Shown piece by piece: positions 5,300 to 62,919 of a stretch of 64,000 nt of DNA (position 1 is its first letter; every line of letters begins with the position of its first letter). The position numbers were made by a program, and so were the translations under genes. The stretch is taken from NCBI RefSeq assembly GCF_016432865.1, contig NC_067398.1, positions 36,766,001-36,830,000 on the forward strand. Direction: 5' to 3'. The notes beneath the pieces are model-generated. The model saw only the letters and a program-made list of their open reading frames with translations. It made no database searches and was not told where the DNA came from. This stretch comes from Antechinus flavipes. Lineage: Eukaryota.

Positions 5300-5905
5300 C
5301 TTTTTTTGTCTTTAGTAAATTTATTTATTTTTAATGCACATTACATTATCAATGATGTTGAGAGAGAAAAATCAGAGCAAAAGGGAAAAACCATGGAAGA
5401 GATTAAAAACAAAAACAAACAAAAAAAATGGACATATCATATGTTGATTTACTTTCAATCTCCTTAGTTCTTTTTTTTAGATGCAGATAAAATTTCTGTC
5501 CAAAGTCTATTAGGATTGTTTTGGATCACAAAACCACTGAGAAGAAGCAAGACTCATAGTTGATCATCTCACATTCTTGCTGTTATTGTGCACAAGATAT
5601 TCCTGTTTCTGCTTGTTTTGTTCAGCATCAGTTCATGTATATCTTTCCAGGTCTTTCTAAAATGGGCTTGTTCATCATTTTATAGAATAATAATAATCCA
5701 TTATTTTCATATACCACAACTTGTTCAGCCATTCCCCAACTGACAAGCATCTACTCATTTTCCATTTCTTTGTTACCACAAAAAGAGGTGCTACAAACAT
5801 TTTTGCACATGTGGGTCCTTTTCCCTCCTTTAAGATTTCTTTGAGATACAGATTCAGTTAATGTCATTGCTGGGTCAAAGAGTATGTATAGTTTTATAGT
5901 CTTTA
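5300..5905 (-). mobile_element. 5'-truncated L1 (ORF2 C-terminus plus 3'UTR)
   Basis: cttgttcagccattccccaactgacaagcatctactc...tttttgcacatgtgggtccttttccc...gctgggtcaaagagtatg is similar to the reverse complement of the ORF2 3' end of the L1 at 58.6-59.0 kb. Confidence 0.85.
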
Positions 5906-9232: not shown

Positions 9233-9415
9233 NNNNNNNNNNNNNNNNNNNNNNNNNNNNNNNNNNNNNNNNNNNNNNNNNNNNNNNNNNNNNNNNNNNN
9301 NNNNNNNNNNNNNNNNNNNNNNNNNNNNNNNNNNNNNNNNNNNNNNNNNNNNNNNNNNNNNNNNNNNNNNNNNNNNNNNNNNNNNNNNNNNNNNNNNNNN
9401 NNNNNNNNNNNNNNN
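9233..9415. other. Assembly gap (183 N)
   Basis: Run of n. Confidence 1.
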
Positions 9416-21309: not shown

Positions 21310-23385
21310 CAATTTTTTTTATCAATTTTTATTTTGTTAATATGGAATACCAGAGGAAATTTCTTGTATTAAAATCAGATATCATTATTTATATATTAAA
21401 TTAGATTTATTACCACAATTATATAAGCAATTTGTTCATCCATTCCCCAATTGATAGATATTGTCACCATTTCCAATTCTTTGTCACCATGAAAGAACTG
21501 CTATGAATATCTTTGTACATATAGATCCATTTAAAAAAAAAAAAAAAACTCTATGTTATGCAGACCTAAAACTTATATTGCTTGGTCAAAGAGTATGCAT
21601 GATTTTATAACCCTTTAGATGTAGTTCTTAATTGTTTTACAGAATGATTAAATCAGTATCACAACTTCCCCAAAATGCTTTAATATTTCAAATTTTTCAT
21701 ATACTCGCTAACATTTCTTATTTCCATTTTCCCCCATATTAGCCACTCTGATAGAGATGGGCTGGTAGTTCAGAGTTGCTTTGATTTGCATGTCTCTAAT
21801 CAATAGTGATTTAGATTATTTTTCCCACATGATTATATGTAATGGGCTGAAGCTGAGCAAATGCACTGAGGTCCGAGCACTTAAGGCTAATTACCAATTG
21901 GACAATATTCTATTAGTATATGCTTGGAGAAAGAATGGCCCCACCCACTCTCTGTGCAAGTTTAATCTGCTGTATAGGAGATTGGGTAGAGGATTTAGGG
22001 GATGGAGTGTGAGAGCCAGATGCACTGCTGGCCAGATTCATGTTGCAATTGCTCTCACTTCGTATTGCCATTATCATTCACCTCTGCAAAGAATAAAGAT
22101 CAAGGACTTTTGCTTATCCTGACTCCGGCTGATTTTAAAATACTCTGGGTGCTAACGCAGTCATCACAATTACAGATAGTTTTTATTAATTCACCTGAAA
22201 ATGGCCTCTCCCTATCCTTTGGTCCTTTATAAATTGAGGAATAGCTCTTATTTCTATAAATTTGATCCAATTGTCTATATATCTGAAAAATGAGTTTTTA
22301 TCAGAGAGATAATGGTAATTTTTTCAAAATTATTATTCTTTGTATTGACCTCCATCCCCTTTGCCTTCTGTTTGCCCTATTCTGATTTTGAAGGTGTTTT
22401 TTTTAGTCCCTTCTTTTTTTGTGCTGTTGTTTCTTCTTTACCAAATTGTTGACTCTTTTTTTGTTCATGATTTACTTTCAATCACCTTTATCCTCCACTA
22501 TTCTTACTTGATTTTTAAAATCCTTTTTGAGCTCTTCCATGACCTGAAACTATTTTTCTTTGAGATTTTGGATATAGCAGTTTTGATTTTGTTGTCTTCT
22601 AAATTTGTGGTTTGACCCCATAGTAACTTTTTGTCAGAATCTTTTTCTCCTATGTGTTCGTTTTTCAGCTCACTAATTAACTTTTAGTTCATTACTAAAG
22701 TGGGACTCTGTTTCCAGAGAAGAGGGGGCATTGTCCCCAGCTTCAAGTTTTTGTGCAATTGTTTTCAGAAACAATTCTGGACATCTGTAAGCTTTCCATT
22801 CTTGGAAGGTTATATGATCTAGGGAGAAGTGTGTTTACTATTCCCCTGTCTGTGTTCTGGTCTGTGATAGAAAACAAGCATCCTTTTCTGCCCTGGAACT
22901 GATTCTGAGTTCCCTGCTCCATTGCAGCTATTAACCCTGGTGTGTTAGTGCTCCTTCTTTCTCTGATATTGAGACTCTGTATTGGGGTTGCAATTTAGAT
23001 CCAAATATGGACAAACCAAAAGAGTTCTGACCCCAGTGCCAGTAAAGAGACTTGGAATCTCCTTTGGGCTAATTATCTGACCCCTTACTGTTTGTGGCCC
23101 CAAAAGTCTGGAAACTGTTACTATTTCCATTGATTCAGTTGTCTCCAAGAACAACTACCAGTTTTCTGCCATGGCTTGAACTGGACTGTGTTCCTCTCTT
23201 AACATGATGTGACCTTTCCTATTGAACTTCTAATATGTCTTAAACAGGAAAATTGCTTCACCTCATCCTTTTGTGGGTTCTGCTACTCCAGAATTTGTTC
23301 TGAGGCATTACTGAAAAATGTTTGGAGAGGTTTGGGGGAGAGCTCAGGTGAATCCCTGCCCATTTGGTTCCCCCCTATATATTTT
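21310..23385 (-). mobile_element. Old L1 with 5'UTR, partial ORF1, ORF2 C-terminus and 3' end; interrupted by an LTR
   Basis: 21.4-22.3 kb is antisense ORF2 C-terminus (gatttgcatgtctctaatcaatagtgat); 22.33-23.38 kb resembles antisense ORF1 N-terminus and 5'UTR, ending tttggagaggtttgggggagagctcaggtgaatccctgcc (marsupial L1 5' end). Confidence 0.75.
21838..22168 (+). mobile_element. Solo ERV LTR (331 bp)
   Basis: Begins TGTAATGGG, ends GTCATCACA; AATAAA at 22092-22097; flanked by attata (21832-21837) and attaca (22169-22174); splits a contiguous L1 segment. Confidence 0.88.
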
Positions 23386-29639: not shown

Positions 29640-30205
29640 AACTACGTATAAAAATAAAATTTAAAAATTCTAATTATATGTCCCACATGGTTTATTTTTA
29701 AAAAGGATAAATATATAAAATATCTTTTTTATGTTAAACGTGTAATTCTTCTATGCATATTTTCACATTTATCATGCTGCAGAAGAAAAATCAGATCAAA
29801 GAGGGGGAAAAAAAGAGAAAGAAAGAAAACAAAAAGCAAACAAACAACAAAAAAAATGTGAAAAAGCTATGTTCTGATTGATCCACGGTCAGTCCAGACA
29901 GTCTTCTTCCTCGACAAAGATGGCTTTCTCTATCATAAGTCTATTGAATTGACCTGAATCACCTTATTGTTGAAAAAAATTTGTCCATCAGAATTGATCA
30001 TCACATGATTTTCTTGTTGCTGTGTACAATGTTCTCTGGGTTCTACTCACTTCACTTACCATGAATTCAATAAATCTCCCCAAGCCTATCTAAAATCATC
30101 CTGTTGATCATTTTTTATAGAACAATAATATTCCATACCATAACTTATTTGGCCATTCTACAATTGATGAGAATTCACTCAGTTTCTAATTCCTTGCCAC
30201 CATTA
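29640..30205 (-). mobile_element. L1 3' end (antisense)
   Basis: gaattgatcatcacatgattttcttgttgctgtgtacaatgttctctggg...ggccattctacaattgatg. Confidence 0.8.
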
Positions 30206-30229
30206 AAAAGGCTTTTAAAAATATAAAAT

Positions 30230-43591: not shown

Positions 43592-43724
43592 NNNNNNNNN
43601 NNNNNNNNNNNNNNNNNNNNNNNNNNNNNNNNNNNNNNNNNNNNNNNNNNNNNNNNNNNNNNNNNNNNNNNNNNNNNNNNNNNNNNNNNNNNNNNNNNNN
43701 NNNNNNNNNNNNNNNNNNNNNNNN
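43592..43724. other. Assembly gap (133 N)
   Basis: Run of n. Confidence 1.
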
Positions 43725-43772
43725 TCGACGCGTTACCATGGCTCCCTGGAAGCTGTGCCTGAGGACCTAGAC

Positions 43773-43820
43773 ATGCCGGTCACGGATGTTCCCTTCTTCC
43801 TTCTTTGTGCCGGTTTTTTG
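43773..43820 (+). CDS. Candidate first coding exon, MPVTDVPFFLLCAGFL, phase-0 donor (possible signal-peptide start)
   Basis: gacATGc start, 16 codons with a hydrophobic tail, then gtgagt; frame also open back to the gap; protein not recognised. Confidence 0.35.
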
Positions 43821-43827
43821 GTGAGTG

Positions 43828-43979
43828 NNNNNNNNNNNNNNNNNNNNNNNNNNNNNNNNNNNNNNNNNNNNNNNNNNNNNNNNNNNNNNNNNNNNNNNNN
43901 NNNNNNNNNNNNNNNNNNNNNNNNNNNNNNNNNNNNNNNNNNNNNNNNNNNNNNNNNNNNNNNNNNNNNNNNNNNNNNN
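43828..43979. other. Assembly gap (152 N)
   Basis: Run of n. Confidence 1.
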
Positions 43980-44199
43980 AGAGCTCCTGGGGCGGGGGGA
44001 GGGGTTGGTAGATGGGGCAGTTCTGTCCCTGTCCACTTCTCTAAAGCCGCCCTCTCTCAGCAAGGAGGCTGGGTGGAAAATCCAATCAACTCCTGTTCCT
44101 ACTATTACTTGGGCAGCTACTAACCACCATCTCCAGGGGGTGGGCTATGGGGGAGCGGGAGGGAGTGCAGAGCTGAAGTAGAAACGCTGGCAACAAGGA

Positions 44200-44208
44200 A
44201 GGGTAAGT
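44200..44208 (+). promoter_or_regulatory. Consensus 5' splice donor of a probable alternative first exon
   Basis: caaggaAGG|GTAAGT. Confidence 0.55.
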
Positions 44209-44254
44209 GTCTGGAGAGCGCCCAGCCAGGGTGCCAAGATACAGAAGAACGGAG

Positions 44255-44256
<2 letters not shown>

Positions 44257-44300
<44 letters not shown>
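44257..44300. repeat. (GT)n microsatellite
   Basis: Direct read. Confidence 0.97.
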
Positions 44301-44302
<2 letters not shown>

Positions 44303-46637
44303 GGGGAGAGAGAAAGGGAGAGGAGAGTTGAGGGATTGGGGGGCGGGAGCCTAGGGAAACCCAAGGAACCTAGTGTTTTGACCTGGGGTGTGCAGATAGA
44401 GCTGCCTTTGGCTCTCCGGGGAGATTAAGGCACTGAGATTTTTTTTCCCTATTTTTGCCCTAAAAGATAGATAAAGGAGAGGAGGAAGAGTGGGAGGGTG
44501 GAGTGCCTAGGCTAGAAGTACCCTGGGTGACCCCCATTTCCTCCCCCAGGGACCCGATCTAGGCTGGTACAGTGGGTTGCTCGAAGGAGATGCGTTCGTT
44601 GTTGGGGAAGAGGTTCTTGGCAAGGAAATCCCACGTTTCCAGTCTCTGCCGCTTGTTCGGAACCTTGCCCTTTAAATCCTCGGCTTTGGCTGCCAGGGGG
44701 GAAGCGAGCCAGGCTTAGCCCGCGGGGAACAACGGAGGAGGCACTGGGGACCCGGCAACTTGGGGAGCTTTGGAATGCGTTTGGTGGTGCACGCTCCCGT
44801 GCCCGTGTGTACGCGGCCGCGTTCGTGAGAGCGCGTGCACCGCGCCAGGCACATCTTCAGGGACTGCTGGGGAGGGGAGGCAGGGACGCTGAGCTCTGGC
44901 ACCAGTGGCTCTTTTGGAAGCCACCTTCTGCTCCATGCCATTCTGTCTCCTCTTCCCTCTCCTCTCTGAAACCATCTGTCACTGCCACTGAGACCATTCA
45001 GAAAGGCAAGATTCTGGCCAGAGCAGATTGAGATGAATAAGCTGCTGGACCTGGCAAAGTTGGCATGGGAGGGCATCGAGAAGCGTGCTTCAGCAAACGG
45101 GAGGGAGGGGAAACTTTGAGTAGCCGTACTGGAGGAGGAAAAAACGAGATTTTAATGAATAAAATCAAGATATTTTCTAGGACTCTGGATGTGGGAAATG
45201 GGGGCCGGGGGAAGGAGGGGGGCGGTCCCTTGTTCCCATTTACAGTTGCTGCTTTTTGAGTTCAGTTTGCTTAATTTCAGCCTTCCCTGATGGATAATAA
45301 TGAGCTTGGATAGTATTCTTTGGTTCAGATATACATTTAATTTCATTCTGCCCATTTTATCCTTAAGTGCTGTAGTGAATTTACCCAAAGTGGCACAGTG
45401 TGGTGGTATATAATGATCTCTTGTGAGCTCCTCAATGTAGTTAGGGAGTAAATTGAGACAAATGGGTGATATTTTAAAAGAATTTGACTGAGTGTGATTT
45501 CTGGGTACTGTAGTTCATTAAAAATGGATTTCAGAGCATTTTGTGCTCACTTTCCAAAAAGGGCTTCAGAGTGCAATGGTAAAATCATCTGATGCTTTGT
45601 GTTTTCTTGTAGTTATACTGTCCTCAAGGCCTTCAAACAATGGCTTTTAGTGAAAGGAAATAAGTGTTTACTTTTCAGCCCACTAGGTGTGTGATTTCTT
45701 CACCATAGACTATACTCCCAGCTCTGTAAAGTTAATTTCAATCATTAAGTCTATTACATGATGTAATACTCCATTGAACATAGCTGCTACCTTGAAGTTC
45801 GGTGATCTCATGAAGTATGCAGGCTCTCTATATGAAATCGGTCTTGTATGTTTACTCATGTGTTTTTGGTGAATGTCAGAAAAATAAATGTGGGAGATTT
45901 TATAGATAAATATAGATATATGCAGATATCCATATGCTCATACATAAATATATACCTATATACTTACATACATACATATACATATATACCATTTCCACTG
46001 CCCTCCAGGTTTATATCTTAATATTGACATTCTTTGAAAATAAAATTTCAGTATAGATGACAGATTATCTCAGCCACTTTTCATAGCAACTGGTACATAG
46101 TAAATCCTGAATGAATTCTTGTTCCCTAAACCTAGAACATAGTTTTTTTTTTTTTTTTGGTTTTGTCTAAACATTTTATTCATTTAGCTAGGTCATTTTA
46201 TGAAGGATTTGATAAGTAAAATATTAGATCTCTAATCTTTTTTCCCCATTGGGTAAGGGAAGATTCCACAGTGGAACAGAACCAATAGGATAATAAGCAA
46301 ACTTGAAAAATCTGGTTAAATTGTGTATTTACTGGTAAAAGTTTAGGTATTCTGCGTTGACAATCCCTCTTGAGAGAAGGCTTAATCTTCACATAGAGGT
46401 TTAAAAGGTATCCAAGAGAATTAATGTGACAGCTTGACTGGAGTTCATTTGATCATTTAAATATTGTTTCCCAGGAGTCCTGGCATAGATGTTTCACTTA
46501 TTGGAAATAATTTTTCACTTTGGTCTGTGACAGATGACAGAACGAAGTATTCTATGCCTATTTTACAATTTTTGAGATTGCTTTATGGTTTAAAAAAATC
46601 TAATGAACACTTAAATGAGTCAGAAAAATACATTAAA

Positions 46638-52620: not shown

Positions 52621-52969
52621 TAGATTTCTTATTACCTTGTATAAGTATAGGCTAAGCCAATGAATTCTACTGTTCATTGTTATTATTTTGTGAAATGAAT
52701 TCTCATCCTCCTTTGGAGAAGAAGAGTTTATTAAGGGAAATCACTCAGACTATATACAGATGTGTATATTGTGATATAAAGTTTTGTTTTCAGAAATAAG
52801 CTTTGTGTATAGCTGAGAAATAAATGTGATCATTGGTTTTCATAGATGTCTCAAGGGATCCATTTTATGCATATTCTAGGTGGATTCGTCATGCCTCTTC
52901 AGGTACTAAAGTTAGGTTCCCCTCCCAGTGAATCAACTAAGATTATGAGTTCAGGAAAAGTACTTCTTG

Positions 52970-52984
52970 AAACCTGGTGAATCC
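52970..52984 (+). repeat. L1 left TSD aaacctggtgaatcc
   Basis: Identical to 59497-59511. Confidence 0.98.
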
Positions 52985-53576
52985 GACTTCCGGCCAAGAT
53001 GGCGGAGAGGAAATACACTTCTGTGTAATCTCCGTGTTTTTCTCTCACTATTCATTTCATTTCATGCCTCTGAATTAATGCTCGACTGAAAAAAAAACCA
53101 TACAATTACTTACCAAGAGAAACCATCCTTGAGACTCGTCAAGAAAGGTCTGTTTTTGCGCGAGGGCGGGGACGGTATTTGGAAGCAGTCTGCGGGCAGC
53201 AGCGGCAACCAGAGCACAGATAGCAGCTCAGAACCGGGTGGAGCGGAGAGGGGGTAGGAAGCAATCGCAGCCGTCTCTGCGTTGAGAGCTTTGCTATAGG
53301 AGCAAGTCAGCAGCCCAGCAGAGAAGCTAAAAACACCGGGGGTGAAGAATACAATCCCAAACAGCTGGAATTTCTCGGGACCTGGCCACCCCTCCCCCAC
53401 AGTGTCTTAGCCCGCTCGGATCTCAGAGCGCTCGGATCTCAGTGCGCAGGCGCCATAGCACAGTAGGACCTGTGCCTCACGAATACCCTGCCCCTCCCCC
53501 AAAGAAAGCAGCCTCCATTCAAGGGGTTTTTTTTCCTTCTGTTTCTTTGATAGTTTGTCTTTGATAAATAGACAGA
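52985..53576 (+). promoter_or_regulatory. L1 5'UTR internal promoter
   Basis: ETS-like ACTTCCGG at 52986-52993, YY1 motif AAGATGGCGG at 52996-53005, CpG-rich body, 14-bp direct repeat cgctcggatctcag at 53413-53426 and 53429-53442. Confidence 0.88.
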
Positions 53577-54680
53577 ATGAGCAAGAAACTGAAAAAGAAT
53601 TTAACCCTGGACAGCTTTTATACAGATAAAGAGCAGACTCCAAACCCTGAGGAGACTAAAAACAAACAGTCCCCAGGTGAATCCCCGAAGGAAGAGACCT
53701 TATGTCCCTCAGCACAGATGAATCTCATGGAGGAAATTAAAAAGGCTCTCACAAGGGAGCTAGAAGAAAAATGGGAAAAGGAGAGGGAGGCTCTGAAAAA
53801 GGAGAGGGAGGCTTGGCAAAAGAGCCTGGAGAAGTCAGTTAAAGAGAGAGTGGATAAAGAAACCAAATCCTTGAAAAATAGGATTAGTGAACTGGAAACA
53901 GAAAACAGCTCTCTAAAAAACAAAATTGGCGAAATGGAAAAAAATTCCACAGAACAAAAGAACTCAATTGGACAATTAGAGAAAGATCTTAAAAAAGTGA
54001 GTGAAGAAAATACCTCACTGAAAATCAGGGTCGAACAATTGGAATTGAATGACTCGAGGAGACAAGAAGAATCAGTCAAGCAAATCCAAAAAAATCAAAC
54101 AATGGAAAAGGATGTGAAATACCTTCTGGGGAAGACAACAGACCTGGAAAACAGATCCAGGAGAGACAACCTGAGAATCATCGGACTTCCAGAAAAGTAT
54201 GATGAAAAAAAAAGCCTGAACACTATCTTCCAGGAAATTATCAAAGAGAACTGCCCAGAAGTCATAGAAACAGAAGGTAAAATAGACATTGAAAGAATTC
54301 ATCGATCCCCTACTGAAAGGGATCCTAAAATCAAAACACCAAGGAATATAGTGGCCAAATGCCAGAACCCTCAGGCAAAGGAAAAAATACTGCAAGCGGC
54401 TAGAAAAACCCAATTCAAGTATCAAGGAGCCACAATAAGGATCACCCAGGATCTGGCAGCATCCACATTAAAGGATCGAAGGGCCTGGAATATGATATTC
54501 CGAAAGGCTAAGGAACTTGGTATGCAACCAAAAATAACTTACCCAGCGAGATTGAGCATCTTTTTCCAGGGAAGAAGATGGACATTCAACGAAATAAGCG
54601 AATTTCATCTATTTCTGATGAAAAAGCCAGAACTTAACAAAAAATTTGATCTACAAGCACAGAACTCAAGAGAAATCTAA
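53577..54680 (+). CDS. L1 ORF1p, 367 aa, intact
   Basis: Coiled coil, DLENRSRRDNLRIIGLPE (RRM entry), IRITQDLAASTLKDRRAW and YPARL (CTD). Confidence 0.97.
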   Translation: MSKKLKKNLTLDSFYTDKEQTPNPEETKNKQSPGESPKEETLCPSAQMNLMEEIKKALTRELEEKWEKEREALKKEREAWQKSLEKSVKERVDKETKSLKNRISELETENSSLKNKIGEMEKNSTEQKNSIGQLEKDLKKVSEENTSLKIRVEQLELNDSRRQEESVKQIQKNQTMEKDVKYLLGKTTDLENRSRRDNLRIIGLPEKYDEKKSLNTIFQEIIKENCPEVIETEGKIDIERIHRSPTERDPKIKTPRNIVAKCQNPQAKEKILQAARKTQFKYQGATIRITQDLAASTLKDRRAWNMIFRKAKELGMQPKITYPARLSIFFQGRRWTFNEISEFHLFLMKKPELNKKFDLQAQNSREI

Positions 54681-55208
54681 AAAGGTAAAGATTAATCTTG
54701 GGAACTATATTTCGGCTGTAAAGATGTATAAAGAATACATGTATACCTTGTTCTAGAAACTAGTTGTGGAAAGGACATTGTACTAGAAAAAAGGGAAAGT
54801 GGGGGTACTACATTTCATGAAGAGGCAAAGAAAACCTAGTAAATCTGAGAGAAAGAATGGAGAGGAATGAAAATAGTGAGTATTTTACTGCTTTCAGAAT
54901 TGGCAGTAAGAGAAGAATTTTAGACATATTCAATCTATGGTGAAACTTCTCCTACCTCATTGAAAAGTGAGAAGGGAAAAGTGAAAAAGGAAGGAATAAG
55001 CTAAGTGGAAGGGAATACGGTAACTGGGAGGGAAAGGGGTAAGTTGGGGGGGGGGAACTCTAAGGGGGGGGAGGGATACTGAAAAAGGGAGGGCTGTGAG
55101 AAGCAAGGGGAGCTCACAAGCTTAATACTGGGAAGGGGGGTAAGGGAGGGGGTAAGGGAGGGGGTAAGGGAGTAAGAAGGGAGAAAAGCATAAACCGGGG
55201 TTAACAAG

Positions 55209-58200
55209 ATGGCAAGTAATACAGAATTGGTCATTTTAACCATAAATGTGAACGGGGTAAACTCCTCTATAAAGAGGAAGCGGTTAGCAGAATGGATTAA
55301 AAGCCAGAATCCTACAATATGTTGTATACAGGAAACACACCTGAAACGGGGTGATACATGCAGGTTAAAGGTAAAAGGTTGGAGCAAAATCTACTATGCT
55401 TCAGGTGAAGCCAAAAAAGCAGGGGTAGCAATCCTGATCTCAGATCAAGCTAAAGCAAAAATTGATCTAATCAAAAGAGATAAGGAAGGGCACTATATCT
55501 TGCTAAAGGGTAGAATGAATAATGAAGAAGTATCTATATTAAATATATATGCACCAAGTAGTGTAGCATCTAAATTCCTAAAAGAGAAATTAAGAGAGCT
55601 GCAAGAAGAAATAGACAGTAAAACTATAATAGTGGGAGATCTCAACCTTGCACTCTCAGAATTAGATAAATCAAACCACAAAATAAATAAGAAAGAAGTC
55701 AAAGAGATAAATAGAATACTAGAAAAATTAGATATGATAGATCTCTGGAGAAAATGTAATGGGGACAGAAAGGAGTACACCTTCTTTTCAGCAGTTCATG
55801 GAACTTATACAAAAATTGATCATATATTAGGACATAAAAACCTCAAACTCAAATGCAGTAAGGCAGAAATAGTGAATGCATCCTTTTCAGACCATGATGC
55901 AGTGAAAATTACATTCAATAAAAAACCACAGGAAAGTAGACCAAAAAATAATTGGAAACTAAATAATCTCATACTAAAGAATGATTGGGTGAAACAGCAA
56001 ATTATAGACATAATTAATAACTTCATCCAAGAAAATGATAATAATGAGACATCATACCAAAATGTATGGGATGCAGCCAAAGCGGTAATAAGGGGAAATC
56101 TCATATCTCTAGAGGCCTATTTGTATAAAATAGAGAAAGAGAAGGTCAATGAATTGGGCTTGCAACTAAAAATGCTAGAAAAGGAACAAATTAAAAACCC
56201 CCAATCAAACACTAAACTTGAAATTCAAAAAATAAAAGGAGAGATCAATAAAATTGAAAGTAAAAAAACTATTGAATTGATTAATAAAACTAAGAGTTGG
56301 TTCTATGAAAAAACCAACAAAATAGACAAACCTTAGTAAATCTGATTAAAAAAAGGAAAGAGGAAAATCAAATTGTTAGTCTTAAAAATGAAAAGGGAGA
56401 ACTCACCACTAACGAAGAGGAAATTAGAGCAATAATTAGGAGTTACTTTGCCCAACTTTACGCCAATAAATTCGACAACTTAAATGAAATAGAAGAATAC
56501 CTCCAAAAATATAGCTTACCTAAACTAACAGAGGAAGAAGTAAATATCCTAAACACTCCTATCTCAGAAAAAGAAATAGAACAAACTATCAATCAACTCC
56601 CTAAGAAAAAAACCCCAGGACCAGATGGATTTACATCTGAATTCTATCAAACATTTAAAGATCAATTAACTCCAATGCTAAATAAACTATTTGAAGAAGT
56701 AGGGATTGAAGGAGTCCTACCAAACTCCTTTTATGACACAGATATGGTACTGATACCTAAACCAGGTAGGCTGAAAACAGAGAAAGAAAATTATAGACCA
56801 ATCTCCCTAATGAATATTGATGCTAAAATCTTAAATAAAATATTAGCAAAAAGATTACAGAAAATCATCCCCAGGATAATACACTATGACCAAGTAGGAT
56901 TTATACCAGGAATGCAGGGCTGGTTCAATATTAGGAAAACTATTAACATAATTGACTATATCAACAACCAACCAAACAAAAACCATATGATCATTTCAAT
57001 AGATGCAGAAAAAGCATTTGATAAAATCCAACAGCCATTCCTAATAAAAACACTTGAGAGCATAGGAATAAAAGGACTTTTCCTTAAAATAGTTAGGAGC
57101 ATATATTTTAAACCTTCAGTAAGCATCATATGCAATGGGGAAAAACTGGAACCTTTCCCGGTAAGATCTGGAGTGAAGCAAGGTTGCCCACTATCACCAT
57201 TATTATTCAATATTGTATTAGAAACACTGGCCTCTGCAATAAGAGTCGAGAAAGAGATTAAAGGAATTAGAGTAGGCAATGAGGAAACCAAACTATCACT
57301 CTTTGCAGATGATATGATGGTATACCTAGAAAACCCCAGAGATTCTACTAAAAAGCTATTAGAAATAATTCATAATTTTAGCAAAGTAGCAGGATACAAA
57401 ATAAATCCCCATAAATCCTCAGCATTCTTGTACACCACCAACAAAATCCAAGAGCAAGAGATACAAAGAGAAATTCCATTCAAAATAACTGTTGATAGCA
57501 TAAAATATTTGGGAATCTACCTACCAAAGGAAAGTCAGGAATTATATGAGCAAAATTACAAAAAAGTTTTCACACAAATAAAGTCAGACTTAAATAATTG
57601 GAAAAATATTAAGTGCTCTTGGATAGGCCGAGCAAATATAATAAAGATGACAATACTCCCTAAACTAATCTATTTATTTAGTGCTATACCAATCAGACTT
57701 CCAAGAAAATATTTTAATGATTTAGAAAAAATAACAACAAAATTCATATGGAACAATAAAAAGTCGAGAATCTCAAGGGAATTAATGAAAAAAAAATCAA
57801 ATGAAGGTGGTCTAGCTGTACCTGATCTAAAATTATATTATAAAGCAGCAGTCACCAAAACCATCTGGTATTGGCTTAGAAATAGATTAGTTGATCAGTG
57901 GAAAAGGTTAGGTTCACAAGACAGAATAGTCAACTATAGCAATCTAGTGTTTGACAAACCCAAAGATTCTAAATTTTGGGATAAGATTTCATTATTTGAT
58001 AAAAACTGCTGGGATAACTGGAAATTAGTATGGCAGAAATTAGGCAAGGACCCACACTTAACACCACATACCAAGATAAGATCAAAATGGGTCCACGACC
58101 TAGGCATAAAGAACGAGATTATAAATAAATTAGAGGAACATAGGATAGTTTATCTCTCAGACTTGTGGAGGAGAAAGAAATTTGTGACCAAAGATGAACT

Positions 58201-59038
58201 AGAGACCATTACCAATCACAAAATAGAAAATTTTGATTATATCAAATTAAAAAGCCTTTGTACAAACAGAACGAATGCAAACAAGATTAGTAGGGAAGTA
58301 ACTAACTGGGAAAACATCTTTACAATTAAAGGTTCTGATAAAGGCCTCATTTCCAAAATATATAGAGAACTGACTCAAATTTATAAAAAATCAAGCCATT
58401 CTCCAATTGATAAATGGTCAAAGGATATGAACAGACAATTTTCAGATGAAGAAATTGAAACTATTACCACTCACATGAAAGAGTGTTCCAAATCACTATT
58501 GATCAGAGAAATGCAAATTAAGACAACTCTGAGATATCACTACACTCCTGTCAGATTGGCTAAGATGACAGGAAAAAACAATGATGAATGTTGGAGGGGA
58601 TGCGGGAAAACGGGGACATTGATGCATTGTTGGTGGAGTTGTGAACGAATCCAGCCATTCTGGAGAGCGATCTGGAATTATGCCCAAAAAGTTATCAAAC
58701 TGTGCATACCCTTTGATCCAACAGTGTTTCTATTGGGCTTATACCCCAAAGAGATACTAAAAAAGGGAAGGGGACCTGTATGTGCCAAAATGTTTGTAGC
58801 AGCCCTGTTTGTAGTGGCTAGAAACTGGAAAATGAATGGATGCCCATCAATTGGAGAATGGCTGGGTAAATTGTGGTATATGAATGTTATGGAATATTAT
58901 TGCTCTGTAAGGAATGACCAGCAGGATGAATACAGAGAGGCTTGGAGAGACCTACATGGACTGATGCTAAGTGAGATGAGCAGAACCAGGAGATCATTAT
59001 ACACTTCGACAACGATATTGTATGAGGATGTATTCTGA
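55209..59038 (+). pseudogene. L1 ORF2 (EN-RT-CCHC) split by one -1 frameshift at 56333-56334
   Basis: EN motifs INVNG, CIQETH, NIYAP, GDLN, KIDH, SDH; RT QGCPLSP and FADD; [18 protein letters not shown]. The second frame is open from 56333 through 56675 to the stop at 59038. Confidence 0.96.
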
Positions 59039-59452
59039 TGGAAGTGGATTTCTCTGACAAAGAGACTTAACTGAGTTTTATTGGAGAAATGATGGACAGA
59101 AACAGCTACACCCAAAGAAGGAACACTGGGAAATGAATGTGAACTATTTGCATTTTTGATTTTCTTCCCGAGTTATTTTTACCTTCTGAATCCAGTTCTC
59201 CCTGTGCAACAAGAGAACTGTTTGGTTCTGCAAATATGTATTGTATCTAGGATATACTGCAACATGTTTAACATATATAGGACTGCTTGCCATCCTGGGG
59301 GGGGGGAGGAGGGAGGGAGGGGGAAAAAACGAAACATAAGTGATTGCAAGGGATAATGTCGTGTAGAAATTATCCTGGCATGGATTCTGTCAATGCGAAG
59401 TTATTATTAAATAAAATAAAATTTATTATAAAAAAAAAAAAAAAAAAAAAAA

Positions 59453-59496
<44 letters not shown>

Positions 59497-59503
<7 letters not shown>

Positions 59504-59511
59504 GTGAATCC
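59497..59511 (+). repeat. L1 right TSD
   Basis: aaacctggtgaatcc directly after the poly(A). Confidence 0.98.
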
Positions 59512-60760: not shown

Positions 60761-62919
60761 TTTTGTCTGATACATAATAGGAATTTCAGGAATGCATATT
60801 GATAGCTTGAATTAAAGCAGAAACTCACATAGCAATAATATAAGGATTTGTTTAGACAATACTTTGTACTTTTCAAAAGCATTTTGACATAGTTCAATTC
60901 AATAAATAATTACTAAATAGTACTCATTAACTGCTTGCTAGAATTAAGGCACATGAAGCACATGAAAAAAAATGTGATCTAGGTTATGTTGATATTATTT
61001 GTATTTTTTAGATAAAGATGCTGAATAATGGAGTGTCTGAGTAACTAGGTCAAGGTCAAAAAAATAGAGAATCAAAAAGAAAATCCAATGTTAATTTAGT
61101 GTTTTGTTTTTTTTTTCCTCCTGTACCACAATTTGTTCTTGTTTTATTTAAAAAAAAAAAAGGAGGTTTACTGTGTGTAGCACTGCAAGGTCCTTTTTGA
61201 AATAGGAAGCTAGAATGATTGAATTCAGCAGTGATTTATCAGCACCTATTTTGTGTAAGGCTAATTCTGGGCATTATGAAATAAATGTGAATCAGAATTA
61301 ACTAATAAGCATTTTTTAAAAAAATATCCTGTTTTACATTAGGTTTTGTTCTACCTCCTGGGGATATAGAGGCGAAATTAATACTTTTTATTTTAGGGCT
61401 CTTCCATTTTTGATGGCGGAAACCACATGCACATCTATGTACATACATATATACATAGGTACAAATGTTTCTTTCTCATTCTTTGCATAACATAGCATTA
61501 ATATATGTTGAAGAATCTTTTATTATTTCTTCTTGTATGCATATGATATACATATATGCATATATATACAAGTTTATATTTTTCAAAAAAAAAGAAAATG
61601 TGAAGATAGAATGACATGATTTGAATTATATTGGTATGGAGGTGGTAAAGAAAGGGAAATTAGAGTATTTTTAAAGAGAAATATGAGAATGAACAGACTA
61701 ATACTTCTCTATCAATTAAAGCTAGGTTACTCAAAATGCATTAAACTAGATGGTTACTTAAAACCTCTTTTCATTCTATGGCATTAAGATTTCCTTTTAC
61801 TTTTCCTTTTTGATTTATAATGGGAGGGACTGGACTGTCTGGAATCAAGCTCATAAAGCTTCCAAGTTAGTTACCATCAGGGGATAATACTGCATATGAT
61901 CTTAGGTCTGGGTTCTCATTGGTCAGTTTTTCCTATTACATATTCAATCTAAGAGTGCCTTAGTAGATTTATGATGCAGGGAAAAAAAAAAAAAAAACAA
62001 AAAAAAAAAAACCTTGCCTTTGCTGCCTTCTTGTGTTTTTCCCCTAACTTAGCATCCTACTTATTAGTTACCAAAATCCATCTAAAGCAACCCAGAACTA
62101 CTAGTTTAGTGGCCTCCTTTTTACCTTTTCTTAATAATGGCTATATCATTTTGATCAAACTTTATTTGTGTAGTGTCTTTCTTTCTAACATAACTATGGT
62201 TATGGAGATCAGTCTCAGTCATATATCTTGTAAATGTGTTACCCATCCCAGGAGTATTAAAAAATGTATAACTTCTGGTGGGATATTAGGCACCAAAGCA
62301 AGCCAGTGGAGATTTTTATTTGGAATGGTTACAAATTTGAAGAAGACCTTAAATGACAGCACCTATGTTATTGTCCAGTTTAACTATGCATAAAATATCC
62401 TGTGAAACCAATTGAAATCTGTGATGTGGTAAAATGCCATTTACTTATTCTTATTCCTATTTTTTAAAAAATGTTTTTTTGAAACCTTTTCAGGGTCTGC
62501 CATGACAAAGCTCTGAAAGCTAAAAATAAGCAAAGTGACATATTTTCCTTTGCTTCTTTGTCAATATAACCAATTTCATGATATCAGGCTTGCATCTCCA
62601 TAAAGGTGTGGGCACCTGAGTTCTGCAACATGAGATAAAAGGGGCTGGCAATGACAAATGCCTTAATACTCTTGGAAATAGCTTTGGTATATGACACTAA
62701 ATGTAATGATAGTATTTTCAATAAGAGCAGCTTATAACTAAGACAATCCCTTAAAGTATAAATATATTCCAATTATTTCCTCGTGTATATTTTAGGGTTT
62801 TGAAATGTTTTTTGTTTTGTCCAATCAGGGCAAAAAAAGCATATATTTTAACATCATAGAATTTTAGCACTGAAAAGAACATCAAATAGGTTCTATTAAT
62901 AATAATGATGGTAATAACA

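Follow-up and report, generated by a model that had tools for sequence, protein, structure and literature searches.

Among the L1 systems described so far, L1-1_SH, which is the youngest of the L1 families in the Tasmanian devil, is a dasyurid L1 like the element examined here (Repbase; Gallus et al. 2015, PMC4408412). In the devil no intact second open reading frame (ORF2) was found, every L1 longer than 6 kb is inactivated by many mutations and no polymorphic activity was seen (PMC4408412), and Ivancevic et al. list the species as a candidate for L1 extinction (PMC5203782). A warning that intact copies could be concealed in assemblies made from short reads is given in both papers (PMC4408412, PMC5203782). 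The opossum family L1-1_MD, which belongs to another marsupial order, comprises approximately 500 copies with both ORFs intact at a mean distance of 1.3%, consistent with ongoing activity (PMC4408412). On L1 activity in Antechinus we found no paper; the genome papers give repeat totals only (PMC9290055 among them). Here we analyse a full-length L1 of 6.5 kb that occupies positions 52985-59496, on the plus strand, of a 64,000-nucleotide (nt) stretch of the Antechinus flavipes genome (contig NC_067398.1, positions 36,766,001 to 36,830,000). We refer to the whole of this stretch as the window, and its numbering is used throughout.

The evidence makes it very likely that this element is a dasyurid full-length L1 which was inserted by endonuclease-dependent target-primed reverse transcription, very recently, and which is still segregating in the organism nearest to the window while being absent from two sister organisms. 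The element is bracketed by an exact direct repeat of 15 nt, AAACCTGGTGAATCC, on the plus strand, with one copy at 52970-52984 and the other at 59497-59511. The two copies of this target-site duplication (TSD) are 100% identical and lie exactly at the element ends. The certain length of the duplication is 12-15 nt, the initial three A being indistinguishable from the tail, and the chance of finding even an exact 12-mer at both ends of the element is approximately 4^-12. Immediately upstream of the 3' copy lies the A tail (59430-59496, plus strand), 67 nt long with 64 A. At the insertion point the bottom strand has the sequence GGTTT/CAAG, in which a purine-rich part comes after a T run; this agrees with the known preference of the L1 endonuclease. 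The hallmarks of target-primed reverse transcription, namely the A tail, the TSD and the T-rich nick site, are therefore all present, and a preliminary description of the locus, which had reported a perfect 15-bp TSD and a tail of about 70 nt, was right on both counts. Within the tail we also observed the trinucleotide GGT (59453-59455), which interrupts it after the first 23 A and is followed by a further 41; this could stem from the tail of the source element, from slippage or from a later change.

Established knowledge of L1 would suggest the following course of events. The bottom strand would have been nicked at 5'-GGTTT/CAAG-3', and the T run at the nick would have annealed to the A tail of the RNA and primed synthesis. 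Copying would then have proceeded over the entire RNA, up to its cap-proximal base, which corresponds to position 52985, and a second nick, staggered by 15 nt, would have given rise to the duplication.

We compared the 5' junction with the Logan contigs (k = 31) of public sequencing runs, which cover 915-916 nt of the L1. Six runs contain most of the 5' flank and contigs were examined from four of these. Runs X17 and X18 are two samples of the closest organism, which we call organism D, and share words with the window at 0.76 and 0.63, respectively. Runs X19, X20 and X22 come from organism E (0.58-0.60) and run X21 from organism F (0.59); the four runs examined are X17, X18, X19 and X21. The contigs described are those found among the records listed, which are few of approximately 19,000. 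Three long contigs, record 4 of X17 (2697 nt, depth 18.7), record 18 of X19 (2214 nt, depth 42.5) and record 25 of X21 (2594 nt, depth 20.5), match the 5' flank as far as 52981 and then match none of the 915 nt of L1, running on past this position for 2493, 1646 and 1665 nt, respectively. These contigs cannot traverse the L1, because their mean word depth is that of the single-copy flank, against a family that stands 10^4-fold higher. On the assumption of collinearity with the 3' flank, their ends would lie at approximately 62001 (X17), 61154 (X19) and 61173 (X21). The first of these positions falls inside an A17CA13 run (61982-62011), the next inside an A12 run (61150-61161) and the last about 12 nt beyond that A12. 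Runs of A are typical places for de Bruijn contigs to break. Taken with their depth and length, we infer that the L1-free contigs continue into the 3' flank.

The filled allele was recovered from the other sample of organism D. Record 15 of X18, a contig of 71 nt at depth 16.4, matches the window without a single difference over 52938-53008 and so runs across the junction at 52984/52985; with k = 31, every 31-mer of this contig straddles the junction. The flank contig of the same run stops at 52967, and its overlap of exactly 30 nt with the junction contig places a branch at 52968; X18 probably carries a second allele. In X17 there is no branch at 52968 and the L1-free contig stands at full diploid depth; this sample looks homozygous for the L1-free state. 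Between 52065 and 52707 the X18 sequence, at full depth, departs from the window by 9 substitutions and an insertion of 12 nt, and that of X17 at 3 positions, so neither run derives from the sample that was assembled. The individual that was assembled and X18 thus have the L1, whereas X17, which bears the same organism label as X18, and organisms E and F lack it. Both alleles are thus found within organism D, and at the orthologous site in X19 and X21 the element would be absent, given the continuation of their contigs into the 3' flank. We conclude that this is an ordinary L1 insertion polymorphism. Close to the junction, position 52869 is A in all four runs, from three organisms and including X18 with its filled allele, and G in the window; the G would be either private to the haplotype that was assembled or a mistake in the assembly.

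Several lines of evidence bear on the age of the copy. In the first 916 nt of the copy (52985-53900) another letter reaches 10% or more of the depth among the family contigs at a single position, 53338; the window carries the majority letter there, and no insertion or deletion is listed. Compared with the family majority, the copy has no private substitution over this length in any of the four runs, which gives a 95% upper bound on divergence of approximately 0.33%. At the rate of 1.37e-9 per site per one-year generation reported for Antechinus (PMC9290055), this bound would correspond to an age under roughly 2.4 million years (My) and is a loose one. Segregation within a species would suggest an age far below 2.4 My; the antechinus species split dates to approximately 6-7 million years ago (PMC9290055). 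Simulation with substitutions only, over the three open pieces of the coding regions, left 12% of trials without a new stop codon at a divergence of 1% and 5% of trials at 1.5%, which places divergence below approximately 1.5% at the 5% level. The observed to expected ratio of CpG is 0.29 in the element and 0.65 in its 5' untranslated region (UTR), compared with 0.05-0.09 in the flanks, a 3-6-fold excess for the element as a whole, in keeping with the many surviving CpGs noted before. A search for paralogues within the window found only old fragments of about 70% identity, so divergence cannot be dated from copies in the window. The old fragments include L1 3' pieces on the minus strand at 5601-5898, 21582-22305 and 29984-30224, with approximately 68-75% identity to the element. 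The preliminary description had suggested that the insertion was recent, possibly polymorphic, and derived from a marsupial L1 lineage that is active, and this is supported by the L1-free contigs of X17, X19 and X21, the filled junction of X18 and the lack of private substitutions. It had named fixation across related genera together with several percent divergence from consensus as the outcome that would refute it, and neither the L1-free contigs nor the absence of private substitutions in 916 nt fits that outcome.

The coding regions are those of an L1. ORF1 (53577-54680, plus strand) is open over 367 amino acids, as described earlier, and its predicted product matches Transposase_22, the L1 RNA recognition motif (PF02994, E=6e-12), and a domain resembling the double-stranded RNA-binding domain (PF17490, E=2.9e-7). 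An ORF1 protein of Sarcophilus harrisii aligns with it collinearly over the full length, at 83% identity. Further matches in the word search were to Sminthopsis at 72%, followed by wallaby, wombat, bilby and opossum. Nothing closer than the Sarcophilus protein was found by this search in the protein collection, no antechinus protein was among the matches, and an exact look-up of ORF1 and both pieces of ORF2 in the collection gave no match. These similarities mark the element, on its predicted proteins, as a dasyurid marsupial L1. Within the region encoding the coiled coil of ORF1 we observed a 21-nt repeat (53772-53822) whose copy number differs among family members, as does that of a 16-nt repeat in the 5' UTR (53405-53447); joints at these two repeats omit 32-36 nt or add 11-12 nt. 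Between the ORFs lies a spacer of 528 nt (54681-55208, plus strand) with G-rich repeats at 55029-55172.

ORF2 is not intact and lies in two pieces. The first piece (55209-56336, plus strand) has 375 codons and encodes an APE-type endonuclease (PF03372) and the start of the linker, its stop being made by a frame break. The second (56336-59038, plus strand) has 900 open codons and encodes the reverse transcriptase (PF00078), with its FADD motif, and the C-terminal Cys-His motif. The pieces are collinear with the human ORF2 protein, the first matching residues 3-376 and the second residues 379-1265, and the order of endonuclease, reverse transcriptase and Cys-His motif is that of L1 ORF2 proteins. 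Both pieces together carry the motifs INVNG, QETH, GDLN, IDH, SDH, FADD and CWRGC...HCWWSC, which bears out the earlier remark that all catalytic motifs of ORF2 are there; that remark had stopped short of calling ORF2 intact. Three-frame translation and the alignments to human ORF2 protein place the frame break within 56325-56340. It is a single break, at approximately 56330-56336, in the linker after the endonuclease and between the positions matching human residues 376 and 379, and the pieces on either side are in different frames; from its start at 55209 to its stop at 59038 ORF2 measures 3830 nt, which is no multiple of three. Apart from this break there are zero stop codons in 1642 codons. 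An autonomous L1 has both ORFs uninterrupted, and the copy as assembled is not autonomous, because ORF2 is split. Most likely it is a non-autonomous product of a live L1 family and not itself a source element. Downstream of ORF2 the 3' UTR (59039-59429, plus strand; 391 nt) contains a G-rich polypurine tract at 59296-59322 and an AATAAA at 59415.

At the other end of the element, the 5' UTR (52985-53576, plus strand) is 592 nt long, with a GC content of 51%. A YY1-type core, ATGGC, lies within AAGATGGCGG at nt 12-21 of the L1 (window positions 52996-53005). In human L1 the YY1 site, at nt 9-20 with the core GCCAT, sets the start of transcription (PMC11602158). Summed contig depth is approximately 20-45 in the flank and reaches 10^5-10^6 in the bin containing 52985 and beyond, an increase of about 10^4-fold; this sum is not a copy number and was used only to call the L1 family very abundant. 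In X17 a family contig of 74 nt starts exactly at 52985, and in X19 a contig joins unrelated sequence to the same base, so other copies of the family share this start. The 5' UTR therefore appears complete, with a putative internal promoter, judging from the common start of the family and the YY1-type core, and the complete 5' end proposed in the preliminary description is matched by family contigs that begin at the same base. Further into the 5' UTR, many family contigs of all four runs depart from the window after 53176 or 53180 and rejoin it at 53301, and the summed depth across 53122-53323 is about half that of the neighbouring stretches. In a large share of the family, 53177-53300 seems to be replaced by another module, approximately 124 nt long, so that there would be two variants of the 5' UTR.

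Set beside L1-1_SH of the devil, the element is similar in total length (6.5 kb against a 6.7-kb consensus), in the spacer between the ORFs (528 against 509 nt), in ORF2 (3830 against 3837 nt) and in the 3' UTR (391 against 415 nt), whereas the 5' UTR, at 592 nt, differs from the 1158 nt of the devil family (PMC4408412). Its ORF1 is 17% diverged from that of Sarcophilus. Unlike the devil copies, with their many inactivating mutations (PMC4408412), the antechinus copy has a single break and is still segregating. Like L1-1_MD of the opossum, its family is a marsupial one in which full-length copies are numerous and nearly identical; the ORF1 proteins of the two are approximately 45-60% identical. 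The polymorphic L1 copies of the human Ta subfamily offer a further parallel, in their full length, in a TSD of approximately 15 nt, in a long tail of pure A, in the CpGs they have kept and in varying between presence and absence among individuals, in an ORF2 that is collinear over residues 3-1265 of the human protein and in a YY1-type core near nt 9-20 of the 5' UTR (PMC11602158). In contrast to these, the element described here belongs to a marsupial lineage, has a 528-nt spacer and an ORF2 that is frame-broken in the assembly, and is known from sequence alone.

The preliminary description had also placed the insertion about 8.8 kb downstream of a splice-donor motif on the same strand. An AGG|GTAAGT motif indeed lies at 44202/44203 on the plus strand, and 52985 is 8783 nt downstream of it. 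A second donor-like motif, GGTGAGTG, at 43820/43821 on the plus strand, ends a short ATG-started frame. The stretch 43980-45000 has a GC content of 58% and an observed to expected CpG ratio of 0.43, compared with 0.08 in the background. Three stretches of the window are masked as N (9233-9415, 43592-43724 and 43828-43979), the latter two flanking 43725-43827, so that this segment and 43980-45000 form a CpG- and GC-rich stretch beside two N blocks. The CpG-rich stretch may mark where a conserved gene has its 5' end. None of the ten flanking ORFs matched Pfam, and no host gene was named. The motifs and the CpG-rich stretch raise the hypothesis that the L1 may lie in sense orientation in an intron near a promoter.

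Could the insertion be older and fixed, its apparent absence elsewhere reflecting short-read contigs that break at repeats? Young L1 copies do break such contigs, and the contig records listed are few; however, three long contigs pass the junction by 1.6-2.5 kb at single-copy depth, X17 is without the branch at 52968 that X18 shows, and the tail is a 67-nt near-pure A run behind a 5' region free of private substitutions. We rejected this very improbable explanation on the long single-copy contigs beyond the junction and the zero private substitutions in 916 nt. That a copy from elsewhere was wrongly joined to this site is scarcely credible: assembly errors are common at high-copy repeats, but here a perfect 15-nt TSD brackets the element, and mis-assembly was rejected on an independent contig from X18 that is identical to the window across the 5' junction. 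Some points do weigh against a very recent insertion that segregates in organism D. The letters of the L1-free contigs beyond 52981 are unread. In three organisms these contigs stop matching at 52981 and not at 52984, and they seem to differ from the window at approximately 2-3 places in 52968-52984, to which two differences in each contig probably belong; the two TSD copies of the window are identical despite these differences near the target. At a few target bases the haplotype that carries the L1 may depart from the common one, and the empty-site string predicted in the preliminary description is maybe not exact for this reason. The X18 junction contig has 24 nt on the L1 side, which is below the 31-nt threshold for bridging, and the view that X17 and X18 are of one species, and of that of the window, rests on coded run labels and the word shares of 0.76 and 0.63. 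Finally, the break in ORF2 may be an assembly error.

This last point leads to the suggestion that the copy is truly intact and competent for retrotransposition, and so a potential source that segregates, the ORF2 break being a consensus error of long reads in a high-copy repeat. The seven-chromosome genome of Antechinus flavipes was assembled from long reads (PacBio plus Hi-C; PMC9290055), and polishing with short reads is unreliable inside high-copy repeats. There is exactly one break in 1642 codons, it falls at short homopolymers, and the element otherwise equals the family majority where the two were compared (916 nt). On the other hand, new L1 copies often acquire disabling errors during reverse transcription. 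We infer that the break is real, and regard an intact copy as rather unlikely. It is somewhat less likely again that the element lies, in sense orientation, within intron 1 of an expressed gene, measurably disturbs the transcription of that gene through premature polyadenylation or slower elongation, and is held rare by selection for this reason. Sense intronic L1 copies are under-represented in mammals, which is well established, and the CpG-rich stretch and the two donor-like motifs on the plus strand point in this direction; against it, no transcript, exon or protein support was found, the ten flanking ORFs are without Pfam matches and the motifs adjoin sequence that is masked as N. The most far-reaching account, in which Antechinus, unlike the devil, harbours an active and very abundant L1 lineage and this locus is an intact segregating source lying in sense in a first intron, seems to us improbable.

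A very recent, segregating insertion by target-primed reverse transcription, as we prefer to read this locus, has consequences for the history of L1 in dasyurids. A full-length copy that still segregates, and that matches its family base for base where compared, indicates that L1 was mobile in the antechinus branch in the very recent past. The locus is a ready presence/absence marker for population work and, should a host transcript be confirmed, heterozygotes would allow the cost of carrying an L1 in sense within an intron to be measured in a natural setting. Another dasyurid, the Tasmanian devil, is proposed to have lost L1 function (PMC4408412, PMC5203782), and recent mobility in antechinus bears on whether that loss is specific to the devil lineage and on the survival of L1 in the dasyurids.

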